Virus record (IMG/VR): IMGVR_UViG_3300032296_003307
Span: 1 to 64,000 of that record
DNA: 64,000 nt
Strand: one strand, 5' to 3'
The position numbers were made by a program, and so were the translations under genes. Of the stretch, positions 19,379 through 24,033 are shown piece after piece. The notes below the pieces were generated by a model. That model did not search any database. It was given only the letters and a program-made list of their open reading frames with translations, and had not been told where the DNA came from. Every line of letters starts with the position of its first letter. Position 1 is the stretch's first letter.

Positions 19379-19648
19379 ATGATTAAATTATTAGAAGTAT
19401 TAAACGAATCTCCTCAAAGCAGCTATCCTCCCTACATGTATTCTCCTATTGGGTTTGGATGTCATGTATGTAAATATCATTACATAGAAGAAGGAAAACA
19501 TATGTGTTCCAACAAATACTATCAAGAATACATTTCAGAACAGTTTCCTGATTTAGAGGATCCTGCTGAATTAGTAGATAATGAAGGTAATCCGATTAAA
19601 GATCCTTCAAAATGGTGTTCAAATTGGTTTATGCCTAAAGGTAAATGA
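19379..19648 (+). CDS. Small Cys-rich (Zn-binding) protein with leader peptide
   Basis: CHVC...C...WC; leader MIKLLEVLNE. Confidence 0.7.
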   Translation: MIKLLEVLNESPQSSYPPYMYSPIGFGCHVCKYHYIEEGKHMCSNKYYQEYISEQFPDLEDPAELVDNEGNPIKDPSKWCSNWFMPKGK

Positions 19649-19905
19649 GACCTTACATAGACTTAGAGGTTACAGATTCTTATATTATTCGTGAATTTAG
19701 CGAAAATATAGACCCTATAGAATTACTATGGCATCGTGATGATGAAAACAGAACAGTTGAAATAATTGGTGAAACAGATTGGAAATTACAATTAGATAAT
19801 CAATTACCAACCTCTATAAATCAACCCATATTTATACCAAAACACGAATGGCATCGTGTTATTAAAGGAACAGGAACACTAAAATTAAAAATATACAAAT
19901 CATGA
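19645..19905 (+). CDS. Small cupin-like protein
   Basis: LLWHRD...W..QLDNQLP...IFIPKHEWHRVIK cupin-type pattern. Confidence 0.6.
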   Translation: MRPYIDLEVTDSYIIREFSENIDPIELLWHRDDENRTVEIIGETDWKLQLDNQLPTSINQPIFIPKHEWHRVIKGTGTLKLKIYKS

Positions 19906-20507
19906 TTTTAACAGAAGAGATATTATTACTTCAAAAAAGAGCAGGCATCATTACTGAGGCCGAATACAAACAAAAACTTTCAGAAGTTGATGTTGAAGAT
20001 GAAATGTTTGCTGCAATGAAATCTGTAGCCAATATGATAGATACAGGTGCAGATAAGGTAAAACCTTCAACAAAAGATGGTCAACTACAAGAGGTTGGTG
20101 CTTTAACTTTAGGTGCTTTAGTAACTGGTGCTCCTGGATTACTTTCTGTTTTGGGTAAAGGTGCTAATTTAATAGGAAAAGTATTTGGAAAAAATAAAAA
20201 CAAAGTTGGTGAATTTTTAAAGAAAAAAGGACATCAATTAGAAGAATATTATCTTGAATCAATTGGAGGTTGGCTAAAATCAGCTTATCCTTCAAAATAC
20301 AATGATCAAGATCCTTTAGACAAAACAACTCCTTTATATGATGCTGCCCATAAAATTTATGGATCTCTTTTAATAGGAGCAGCCCTAGTATCAGGATACG
20401 AAGCAGGACAAGCATCAGGAATAGTACAAAAAGGAGTTGAAGGAGGTTTAGCTCTTCTTAAAGGTAAAGAAGTAATTGATATTGCTCAAAAGATAGCTGC
20501 TGCTTAA
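19902..20507 (+). CDS. Hypothetical protein with hydrophobic Gly/Ala helices
   Basis: N-terminal LLQKRAGIITE motif; two hydrophobic segments. Confidence 0.65.
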   Translation: MILTEEILLLQKRAGIITEAEYKQKLSEVDVEDEMFAAMKSVANMIDTGADKVKPSTKDGQLQEVGALTLGALVTGAPGLLSVLGKGANLIGKVFGKNKNKVGEFLKKKGHQLEEYYLESIGGWLKSAYPSKYNDQDPLDKTTPLYDAAHKIYGSLLIGAALVSGYEAGQASGIVQKGVEGGLALLKGKEVIDIAQKIAAA

Positions 20508-20562
20508 CTTATAGACCGATTCATAGCTTCTTATATATTTTATATATTTATAATAAAATACA

Positions 20563-20661
20563 ATGATAGGAATCTATAAAATTACAAATCCTGAAGGTAA
20601 AATTTATATTGGTTTATCTAAAAATATTGAAAAACGTTTTAAAAATCATAAAAATTTATAA
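20563..20661 (+). pseudogene. Truncated GIY-YIG homing endonuclease (32-aa remnant)
   Basis: MIGIYKITNPEGKIYIGLSKNIEKRFKNHKNL*: perfect GIY-YIG-R N-terminus then a stop. Preceded by ATATTTATA. Confidence 0.85.
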
Positions 20662-20668
20662 TTTAATA

Positions 20669-20809
20669 AAAATAACTATTTTAGAAGGAGATGGATGGTA
20701 TTTTCAAAGAGACAATGAATTACCTTTTGAACTTAAAGAAGGAGTTGACATATTTATACCAAGATTAGAATGGCACCGTGTTATTAAAATAAAAAGAAAA
20801 CTAAAATAA
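20669..20809 (+). pseudogene. 3' fragment of a cupin-like gene paralogous to 19645..19905
   Basis: GWYFQRDNELP...IFIPRLEWHRVIK aligns to the 19645 protein; no proper N-terminus. Confidence 0.75.
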
Positions 20810-21059: not shown

Positions 21060-21071
21060 ATAATATTTACA

Positions 21072-21153
21072 GGCCGATTCATAGCCGGTCGCCCTTAATG
21101 GGATAAAATTATGATAGCTGTGGCATCTCCAAAAAAGATGCCACTTTTAATTT
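21072..21153 (+). ncRNA. Candidate structured RNA (pseudoknot + competing terminator)
   Basis: P1 GGCCG/CGGTC; its loop TCATAGC pairs with GCTGTGG (21117-23); P2 CCC/GGG. The pseudoknot strand overlaps the terminator stem. Confidence 0.55.
21120..21153 (+). terminator. Intrinsic terminator
   Basis: GTGGCATCT-ccaaaaa-AGATGCCAC followed by TTTTAATTT. Confidence 0.8.
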
Positions 21154-21204
21154 AAAAACAGGTGGTGGTCTGATGGGGTTTTCATATATTTATAATAGAA
21201 TAAT

Positions 21205-21846
21205 ATGATTAGTATATATATTTTAGAAAAAAATAATATTCCTTTTTATGTAGGAAAATCAAAAGATCCTATAAGAAGAAAACATAGACATAGACAAATA
21301 TATGGAGATGATATTGTTTTTTATGTAATAGATAAAGTAGAAGAAAATAATTGGAAATTCTGGGAATGTTATTGGATAGAACAATTTAGGCAATGGGGAT
21401 TTAATTTAACTAATAAAAACAAGGGTGGAGGAGGGCCTACAAAATGGACAGATATTCAAAAAGAAAATATTAATCCCTCTCGAATTAATGAAATAAAAAA
21501 TAATAAAGATAGAGGAATAAAAATTAGTAAAACTTTAAAAGAAAGAAACCATTCTCAATATTATACACAAGAGGTTAAAAATAAAATTAGCATAAAAAAT
21601 CAAAAACCAAGACCATTTACTAAAAAACACATTGAAAATATGGGTATAGCTAAACGAAAACAAGCCACTCCTGTACTACAGTACGATTTAGAAGGTAATT
21701 TTATTAAAGAATGGGAAAGTAAAGGACAAGCCGCCCTTTGGATAAAAGAACAAACAGGTAAAACAAGTAATTTGGTTTCTCAAATAAAAGATTGTATATT
21801 AGGGAGACAAAAAACCGCTTTTGGATATAAATGGAAATATAAATAA
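21205..21846 (+). CDS. GIY-YIG homing endonuclease with NUMOD-type DNA-binding domains
   Basis: SIYIL...FYVGKS...RR, ECYWI, LTNK..GGGG; C-terminal VLQYDLEGNFIKEWES...AFGYKWKY (NUMOD1-like). Confidence 0.85.
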   Translation: MISIYILEKNNIPFYVGKSKDPIRRKHRHRQIYGDDIVFYVIDKVEENNWKFWECYWIEQFRQWGFNLTNKNKGGGGPTKWTDIQKENINPSRINEIKNNKDRGIKISKTLKERNHSQYYTQEVKNKISIKNQKPRPFTKKHIENMGIAKRKQATPVLQYDLEGNFIKEWESKGQAALWIKEQTGKTSNLVSQIKDCILGRQKTAFGYKWKYK

Positions 21847-21854
21847 TAAATAAT

Positions 21855-23213
21855 ATGGATAAATATAATAAAAAAATTGTAATTGTTGGAAGTGGAGTAG
21901 CGGGAGCTAACGCTGCCACTAAATTAGTAGACAATGGATACCCCGGTCATCTGATAACAATGATTGATATGGGTAATGATCCTTATGAGCGTAAACCTGA
22001 AGAAGTAATGACAGGTTGGCTAGGTAGTGGAGGGTGGAGCGACGGCAAATTAACTTACCATACAGCAATTGGAGGTCAATTATCTAAATATGTTGGTGAA
22101 AAAAAAGCAATGGAATTAATGGATGAAGTCATTAATAACTTCAAACGTTTTCACCCTAAACCAGAGGAAGTACAATGTTCAAATCCAGAGGAAGAACCAG
22201 AATTTATTAAACCATATTTCGGATTAAGACTGTTTCCTGTTTGGCACGTAGGAACTGATTACCTACATGAAATTGGAAAAAATTGGTATGATTATTTAGT
22301 TTCTAAAGGTGTAGAATTTATTTGGAATGAAAGAGTATTTAAAGTTGATTTTGAGTCTCATTTAGTATATCGTACTGTTGATGGAAAAGAAGGTCATTAT
22401 GCTTTAGAATACGACCAACTTATTTTTGGAGTAGGTAAATCAGGTATTGACTTTGCTCAATCAATCCAAGATGAATATCAATTAGAAACAGAACCAAAAT
22501 CAGTTCAAATTGGAGTTAGATTTGAAGCACCACAACACCATTTTCAAAAATTAATTGACATTTCTTATGATTTTAAATTGTATCGTAAATTTGAAGATAA
22601 AGGTGTTTCATTACGTTCGTTCTGTACTAACAACAATGCTGCTTATGTTGCTGTAGAGGAAACTTATGGTGATTTGTCTTATAATGGCCATGCTAAAAAA
22701 GATCCAAAATATAGAAACGATATGACTAATTTTGGTATTTTGATGGAAATCAATGGAATTAATAATCCTTTTGAATGGTCACGTAATGTTGTAAATAAAC
22801 TACAATTTGGAGGTAGAGGTTTGTATTATTCTCCCTCTCGTACTCCTTCTAAAACATCTGAAGGTGAAGAAGTTAATGCTTTCCAAATTGATTTTTTACA
22901 TGGTGTAAAAGAAGTTATGGGTGAATATTGGAATTATATAGAGGATTTTATTGAGGATATGAAAAAAGTATTCCCAACACTTAAAGATGATTGGGGAGTT
23001 TATATTCCTGAGGTAAAATATCTTTCACCTGAACCCCTAGTTTATCCAAGTGATTTAGCTCTAATTGATTACCCAGATGTTCATTTTGTTGGTGATGCTT
23101 TATCAGCAAGAGGAATTACAGTAGCCGGAAGTCAGGGAATATTATCTGTTTCTAAACTAATTAAAAAAGAGGATGCGTGGGATAATATCCATGGTGATAT
23201 AGTTCATTGGTAA
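21855..23213 (+). CDS. FAD-dependent oxidoreductase (auxiliary metabolic gene)
   Basis: IVIVGSGVAG Rossmann motif, GSGGWSDGKL, C-terminal FVGD..ARGI. Confidence 0.88.
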   Translation: MDKYNKKIVIVGSGVAGANAATKLVDNGYPGHLITMIDMGNDPYERKPEEVMTGWLGSGGWSDGKLTYHTAIGGQLSKYVGEKKAMELMDEVINNFKRFHPKPEEVQCSNPEEEPEFIKPYFGLRLFPVWHVGTDYLHEIGKNWYDYLVSKGVEFIWNERVFKVDFESHLVYRTVDGKEGHYALEYDQLIFGVGKSGIDFAQSIQDEYQLETEPKSVQIGVRFEAPQHHFQKLIDISYDFKLYRKFEDKGVSLRSFCTNNNAAYVAVEETYGDLSYNGHAKKDPKYRNDMTNFGILMEINGINNPFEWSRNVVNKLQFGGRGLYYSPSRTPSKTSEGEEVNAFQIDFLHGVKEVMGEYWNYIEDFIEDMKKVFPTLKDDWGVYIPEVKYLSPEPLVYPSDLALIDYPDVHFVGDALSARGITVAGSQGILSVSKLIKKEDAWDNIHGDIVHW

Positions 23214-23502: not shown

Positions 23503-24033
23503 ATGAAAATAGGATTATGTGGAACAATGAGTGTAGGTAAAACTACATTAGTAAATGCTTTAAAGCAATTACCTGAATTTGCAGATTATAATTTTGCAAC
23601 TGAACGTTCAAAGTATTTACGTGATTTAGGTATTCCATTGAATACTGATTCGACATTAAAAGGTCAAGTTATATTTTTGGCAGAAAGAGCTGCTGAATTA
23701 ATGAATGAAAATATCATTACTGATAGAACAGTTATTGATGTTATGGCTTTTACTAAAGTAGCTCAATCAATTAATTACTATGAGGCAGAAACTTTTTGTG
23801 ATTTAGCTAAAAATCTACTTCATGAATATGATTATATATTTTATGTATCTCCTGATGGTGTTGAAATGGAAGATAATGGAGTAAGAGAAATTGACTTGAA
23901 ATACAGAGAGCTTATTGATAATATTATTCAATTAAATTTAGAAAAATATAAACTTCGTATTAAAAACCTTGCTGAAATATCAGGAACAACTGAAGAACGG
24001 ATTGAAAAAATTAAAGAGACAATTTTTGGTTGA
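23503..24033 (+). CDS. NadR/AAA_28-type P-loop nucleoside(tide) kinase
   Basis: KIGLCGTMSVGKTTL, TERS, TDRTVID, YDYIFY, EDNGVRE. Confidence 0.8.
   Translation: MKIGLCGTMSVGKTTLVNALKQLPEFADYNFATERSKYLRDLGIPLNTDSTLKGQVIFLAERAAELMNENIITDRTVIDVMAFTKVAQSINYYEAETFCDLAKNLLHEYDYIFYVSPDGVEMEDNGVREIDLKYRELIDNIIQLNLEKYKLRIKNLAEISGTTEERIEKIKETIFG

Follow-up and report, generated by a model that had tools for sequence, protein, structure and literature searches.

Conditional transcription terminators that share bases with a ligand-binding fold may be exemplified by the fluoride (crcB) pseudoknot riboswitch and the pbuE adenine riboswitch. In these transcriptional ON riboswitches, the 3' strand of a compact aptamer appears to overlap the 5' arm of an intrinsic terminator, no separate antiterminator is needed, and stabilizing the aptamer gives read-through. 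Here, we describe an RNA element of roughly 90 bases in uncultured aquatic phages that shows a comparable arrangement. However, its sequence and loop are different, it has no known ligand, a promoter-like module lies between its terminator and the downstream gene, and it has been found only in phage contigs so far. The preQ1-I and SAM-II riboswitches likewise appear to combine a 5-6-bp hairpin with a loop that pairs with a downstream strand across an A-rich connecting loop. In the present element, the connecting loop is 18-67 nt long and may hold an extra hairpin, the conserved bases differ, and the direction of control is probably the opposite. A third comparison is with the stem-loop-plus-early-promoter cassettes (PeSL) that seem to occur in T4-type phages, wherein a terminator hairpin is immediately followed by a host-type promoter, in a plastic region with endonuclease genes, and partial direct repeats flank a gene in some genomes. 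Those cassettes are probably multi-copy within a genome and devoid of a pseudoknot, whereas this element is present in one or two copies per complete genome and is tied to one gene family. Last, the lambda nut (boxB) and HK022 put sites also appear to place a phage RNA hairpin with a conserved loop upstream of a terminator, where it could recruit a factor that suppresses termination. They probably act processively on distant terminators through the polymerase, while here the hairpin loop can pair directly with the adjacent terminator arm.

A pseudoknot and a terminator that share bases

The window, that is, the whole stretch of DNA analyzed, comprises the first 64,000 nucleotides of the 268,739-bp IMG/VR virus record IMGVR_UViG_3300032296_003307, which has 32% G+C. 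A preliminary description, made from the sequence alone, had proposed a new structured RNA at 21072-21153 (+), in which a pseudoknot and an intrinsic terminator would be mutually exclusive. All the features it listed were found in place. The P1 hairpin pairs GGCCG (21072-76) with CGGTC (21086-90) around the 9-nt loop ATTCATAGC (21077-85). A small P2 hairpin pairs CCC (21092-94) with GGG (21100-02) around the loop TTAAT and is followed by an A-rich linker (21103-21115). The loop stretch TCATAGC (21079-85) is complementary to GCTGTGG (21117-23) through seven pairs, two of which are G-U. The terminator pairs 21120-28 with 21136-44 (9 bp, five of them G-C) around a 7-nt loop (21129-35), is followed by a T tract (21145-53), and is the only terminator-like site in 19.5-22.5 kb. 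Taken alone, this sequence provided only weak evidence. The MFE z-score was -1.43, and a 7-bp match between the loop and the next 70 nt occurred in 420 of 5,000 shuffles (8.4%). A possibility was that P1 was an unrelated conserved hairpin, that the loop match was due to chance, and that the terminator was an ordinary one placed as an insulator in front of a promoter.

We searched for homologs. A 15-base pattern taken from P1 hit 110 IMG/VR contigs, of which about 75 shared the whole architecture. Because this sample forced the loop sequence, we built an unbiased one by aligning 15 copies of the downstream protein and fetching loci by the protein alone. More than 552 relatives exist, and the best 80 were kept. 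Of these 80 loci, 66 carried the element, counting 65 found by a covariance model built from 119 copies plus L410 (L numbers denote fetched IMG/VR loci). Ten of the other 14 are cut at the contig end and have no upstream DNA, and in L353 the element is split by an endonuclease gene. With further scans, a full element was found in 265 fetched loci, as 178 distinct sequences. Complete genomes of 155-170 kb with terminal repeats carry one copy, occasionally two, and the genome of the window has one full copy (66.9 bits, E 1e-11) and one relic. The samples are lake, pond, and plankton metagenomes. The large terminase is 57% identical to that of Flavobacterium phage vB_FspM_immuto, so a Bacteroidota host is likely.

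The element did not correspond to any described family among those searched. Rfam 15, which includes preQ1-I, fluoride, SAM-II, and pistol, gave no hit at gathering score in the window, only noise around the element at E up to 10, and nothing in seven homologous loci at E up to 0.5. The element was absent from the 50,697 GenBank phage records and was not found in the 151 sampled genomes of the class of a Flavobacteriaceae genome. Literature searches for the sequence and the theme returned nothing relevant.

Homologs made the structure significant. P1 was paired in 99% of cells, with double changes at 4 of 6 pairs, and none of 500 shuffles reached these values. The fourth pair is C-G, U-A, G-C, or A-U in 60, 25, 17, and 13 sequences, respectively, the closing pair changes to U-A once, and whole stems are replaced (GGAUAG/CUAUCC, GACUAG/CUAGUC, UAACG/CGUUC). 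A loose pattern, which also caught chance hits, listed 30 stem combinations, of which about 20 are genuine variants, all around the same loop. P2 is optional. It is present in about 40 of 105 unique copies with covarying stems (CUC/GAG, CUCU/AGAG, CCC/GGG, UCC/GGA) and absent in the rest. In L410 (374-487), a structured insertion of ~55 nt takes its place, yet P1 (GGAUAG/CUAUCC), the loop, and the box are kept; the covariance model missed this copy. The linker varies in sequence and length, the distance from the end of P1 to the box, P2 included, being 18-67 nt and A/U-rich.

In contrast, the 9-nt loop and a 9-nt 3' box, AGCUGUGGC, are nearly invariant. In the window, the box is AGCTGTGGC (21116-21124). 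Its positions 21118-23 pair with loop positions 21079-84 to form the pseudoknot, and its positions 21120-24 also open the 5' arm of the terminator. The loop-box helix was paired in 98% of cases. The seventh pair of the preliminary description (C21085-G21117) is often broken (13 of 119) and is probably not formed.

The rare loop variants were most informative. Across the 178 unique sequences, every loop variant occurred with a matching box. Loop AUUCAUAAC goes with box AGUUGUGGC in four distinct sequences with different P1 stems, loops AUCUAUAGC and AUCUAUAAC go with box AGUUGUAGC in about eight contigs, loop AUUUAUAGC goes with AGUUGUAGC in L609, and loop AUUUAUAUC goes with AGAUGUAGC in L439. 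One phage, L367, even carries two full elements with different loop-box pairs, AUCUAUAAC/AGUUGUAGC before a glycosylase gene and AUUCAUAAC/AUCUAUGGU before the flavoprotein gene (1278-1344 and 2377-2443). The C-G pair becomes U-A in the AUCUAUAGC, AUUUAUAGC, and AUUUAUAUC loop classes, apparently three times. The G-C pair becomes A-U in the AUUCAUAAC/AGUUGUGGC copies and in L367, and U-A in L439, that is, in three to five lineages. One-sided changes also occur (U-G to U-A, U-G to C-G, G-C to G-U). Cognate loop-box duplexes scored -7.8 and -4.1 kcal/mol, against -0.3 and -0.4 for swapped pairs.

A hairpin with a T-rich tail was found in 99 of 120 unique copies, with a mean dG of -16.8 kcal/mol, although about 17% of copies have a weak T tract. 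Stem sequences differ widely between copies, yet the 5' arm starts inside the box in all 99 called terminators, at the G of GUGGC in 64 copies and at the first A in 20. Moreover, the terminator 3' arm tracks the same box positions: loop/box/terminator triples were C/G/C in 57 cases, C/G/U in 6, and U/A/U in 5, and never a mismatch. The box is thus selected to pair with two different partners and cannot pair with both at once. Because two of the pseudoknot pairs are G-U, this holds only for the + strand RNA. The core of the preliminary reading was therefore supported. An insulator terminator with a fortuitous loop match became very unlikely, since the box is far more conserved than a terminator stem needs to be, loop and box covary in at least four lineages, and the element is not a repeated cassette. 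It remains that flavoprotein-gene loci lacking the element (L440, L441, L470) have a plain hairpin followed by the same promoter-like module.

Other pairings and readings of the conserved motifs were not supported. An alternative pseudoknot between loop CAUAG and (C/U)UAUG in the linker looked good in the first, biased sample, but the AUG is not conserved in loci chosen by the protein alone. A leader peptide was likewise disfavored, as the AUG-to-box spacing varies by one base and the AUG is often absent. A closing helix between UAYAG of the 5' flank and CUGUG of the box was 95% paired, but this was no better than in shuffles, and one pair had 17 mismatches. We also considered that the loop might mimic a tRNA-Met/Ile anticodon loop (UU-CAU-AG) and the box a T-box-like UGGN, but both motifs change in the variant classes: UGGC becomes UAGC in three loop classes and CAU changes too. 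In addition, there is no Stem I.

Linkage to a flavoprotein gene and inserted endonuclease genes

The preliminary description had placed the element upstream of a homing endonuclease and an FAD oxidoreductase. Comparison of 76 copies showed that the linked gene is the FAD protein and that the endonuclease is a secondary insertion. The same FAD protein of ~430-470 aa lies downstream of 67 of 76 copies, with its start 20-40 nt after the T tract, whereas the upstream genes belong to many families. In the window, this gene (c0, 21855-23213, +) encodes a 452-aa protein of the uncharacterized COG2509/VP0956 family. Its structural model (pLDDT 84.5) best matches VP0956 (PDB 3NLC) and Cbei_0202 (Swiss-Prot Q05627), both uncharacterized, and the protein atlas places it near PF21688. 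Its function could not be resolved by Pfam, NCBIfam, PHROGs, PDB sequence search, fold search, or the protein atlas, and the context therefore gives no ligand.

Where the gene is not adjacent, something has been inserted between it and the element. In the window, this is a GIY-YIG homing-endonuclease cassette (21154-21846, +), for which Pfam finds GIY-YIG and NUMOD1, both just below its cutoffs. It consists of a conserved leader (21159-21204; GGTGGTGGTCTGATGG..TATATTTATAATA) and the ORF 21205-21846. The G+C-rich leader (GGTGGTGGTCYGATGG) is followed by TATATTTATAATA, and a short ORF starting in it (21173-21208) stops after 11 codons. A cassette of this kind sits between the terminator and the flavoprotein gene in L025, L032, L073, L077, and L483, and the same leader is found in L025, L032, L073, and L483. 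In other loci, the insert is another endonuclease or a DenV-like pyrimidine-dimer glycosylase gene (Pfam PF03013, Pyr_excise), for example, at L365:1708-2178 and in L367, L477, L484, L499, L095-L097, and L105. The latter case is typical of the AUCUAUAGC class and hints that the flavoprotein might belong to a DNA-damage or UV-related module.

A different GIY-YIG family (N-terminus MxGIYKITN) inserts inside the element, exactly after CATAGC of the loop. This bears on the partial copy at 20514, whose GACCG had been taken as evidence that pairing is preserved. This copy exists, but positions 20505-20527 (+) hold only the 5' flank, the 5' strand of P1, and the loop, before the sequence switches to the leader and first 32 codons of a truncated GIY-YIG ORF (20563-20661; whole relic, 20505-20661). 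It lacks the 3' strand, and its G-to-A difference says nothing about pairing. L091 (200-354) and L353 (around 390) have an intact gene of that type at the same junction, and in L353 the box has decayed to TGCTATAGC.

These repeated insertions, inside the element (window 20527, L091, L353) or right after it (window, L025, L032, L073, L077, L415, L483), raised the possibility that conservation acts on DNA, as an endonuclease target, a recombination site, or a hairpin promoter. Partial duplicates pointed in the same direction: in four loci (L051:258, L067:3138, L408:643, on the same contig as L563, and L417:1583), copies with P1 (plus P2) but no box or terminator sit directly upstream of the gene that normally precedes the full element, which is therefore flanked by direct repeats of the 5' module. 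In L408, the two copies diverge exactly at the first bases of the box. Either P1 has a function of its own or these copies are relics of recombination. Nevertheless, we consider a DNA-level element very unlikely. G-U pairs occur on the + strand only, two in the pseudoknot and 13 in P1, against about 3 A-C pairs, the stems covary while the loop is kept, and the low copy number per genome rules against a general promoter. Endonucleases are expected to target any highly conserved DNA, so that their presence is a consequence of the conservation and shows that they use the DNA of a conserved RNA element as a landing site.

Conditional termination as the favored model

Collectively, these data lead us to favor, with moderate confidence, a cis-acting conditional terminator, that is, a riboswitch-like attenuator. 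In this model, inferred from sequence comparison without transcript data, P1 folds first during transcription. When the box emerges, it can pair with six or seven loop bases, giving an H-type pseudoknot with a stem 1 of 5-6 bp, a 2-nt first loop (A, U), a stem 2 of 6-7 bp, and a long A-rich third loop that may hold P2. This pairing would tie up 4 to 8 bases that the terminator needs for its 5' arm, so that the polymerase reads through; otherwise, the much more stable terminator forms. Entry of transcripts from upstream, the ON direction proposed in the preliminary description, and the existence of an effector are all inferences. Since the pseudoknot helix is weak (about -8 kcal/mol against about -17 for the terminator), some factor would have to stabilize it in the short time window of transcription. 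The invariant loop, box, and flanking bases suggest a specific pocket or binding site. Within this model, a small-molecule ligand is a tentative proposal and a protein or other factor a somewhat more tentative one; the strongly variable length of the third loop is less typical of tight ligand pockets. A possible, though speculative, reading is a new metabolite-sensing riboswitch class confined to large phages of aquatic Bacteroidota, binding a molecule connected with the COG2509 flavoprotein. If so, the ligand would give a direct handle on a family that is widespread in bacteria and phages, and the element would be a compact, portable ON-switch candidate for Bacteroidota, where few genetic tools exist.

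Information content was about 0 upstream of P1 in 122 unique copies, except in the 9 nt just before it (21063-21071, +; ATATTTACA in the window, consensus W-A-A-Y-W-U-A-Y-A), whose role is unknown. There is thus no evidence that ATATTTACA is a promoter variant, as had been suggested. The lack of a conserved upstream promoter is expected for an intergenic attenuator, and the element is most likely transcribed from the upstream gene. Upstream ORFs are co-directional and end 5-15 nt before P1 in nearly all copies, and a conserved TAA lies 9 nt before P1. This might point to a ribosome that, on terminating 0-10 nt before P1, melts P1 and decides whether the loop captures the box, without any ligand. 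We regard such coupling as unlikely, because only about a third of the upstream ORFs use that TAA, which is what a random reading frame would give, and because this mechanism would not require an invariant loop and box.

At odds with the favored model, a conserved promoter-like module lies just after or over the terminator: TTTGG, then about 19 nt, then TATATTwA (TATATTAA or TATATTTA), then 4-20 nt before the start codon. The second box is present in 111 of 115 unique copies, and 99 of them have the first box at the right distance. In one subfamily, TTTGG sits in the terminator loop. The module also precedes flavoprotein genes that lack the element. In the genome of the window, TATATTwA lies 5-25 nt before the start codon of about 10% of genes (33/347, against 2/240 inside genes), often with TTTG(G) about 19 nt upstream. 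This likely represents a Bacteroidota-type promoter and appears to resemble the -33/-7 promoter of that phylum, and it implies very short or absent 5' leaders and no Shine-Dalgarno sequence. The flavoprotein gene therefore probably does not depend on read-through, which is unusual for a riboswitch.

This observation keeps open the main alternative, also raised in the preliminary description, namely a discrete small RNA of about 75-90 nt ending at the terminator. It would be cut out of the upstream transcript or made from an unrecognized promoter, and would act in trans on an mRNA or work with the flavoprotein as a partner or substrate, P1 displaying a conserved loop. The strong terminator followed at once by a promoter-like module makes the element and the gene look like separate transcription units, and the compact, low-copy architecture and the existence of P1-only copies speak for this view. 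Yet, we find it doubtful. No conserved promoter was found upstream, although a promoter at variable distance or processing from a longer transcript is not excluded. In a terminated small RNA, the box is locked in the terminator hairpin, so nothing would select for loop-box complementarity, which is nonetheless kept by several compensatory changes. The loop is no more complementary to the start region of the flavoprotein gene than to other genes (-3.47 against -3.31 kcal/mol), and its sequence differs between classes, which a shared trans target would not allow unless the target covaried.

Incidentally, the relic copy is followed by a fragment (20684-20809) whose 41-codon stretch, without in-frame ATG, is paralogous to the C-terminal half of the 86-aa ORF at 19645-19905 (shared IPxxEWHRVIK). 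It looks like a partial duplication of the block upstream of the element and points to a local duplication that accompanied homing. We also noticed that the gene two positions downstream of the flavoprotein gene (23503-24033) encodes a P-loop kinase-like protein (Pfam AAA_28), which matches the NadR kinase domain weakly and which PHROGs calls thymidylate kinase.
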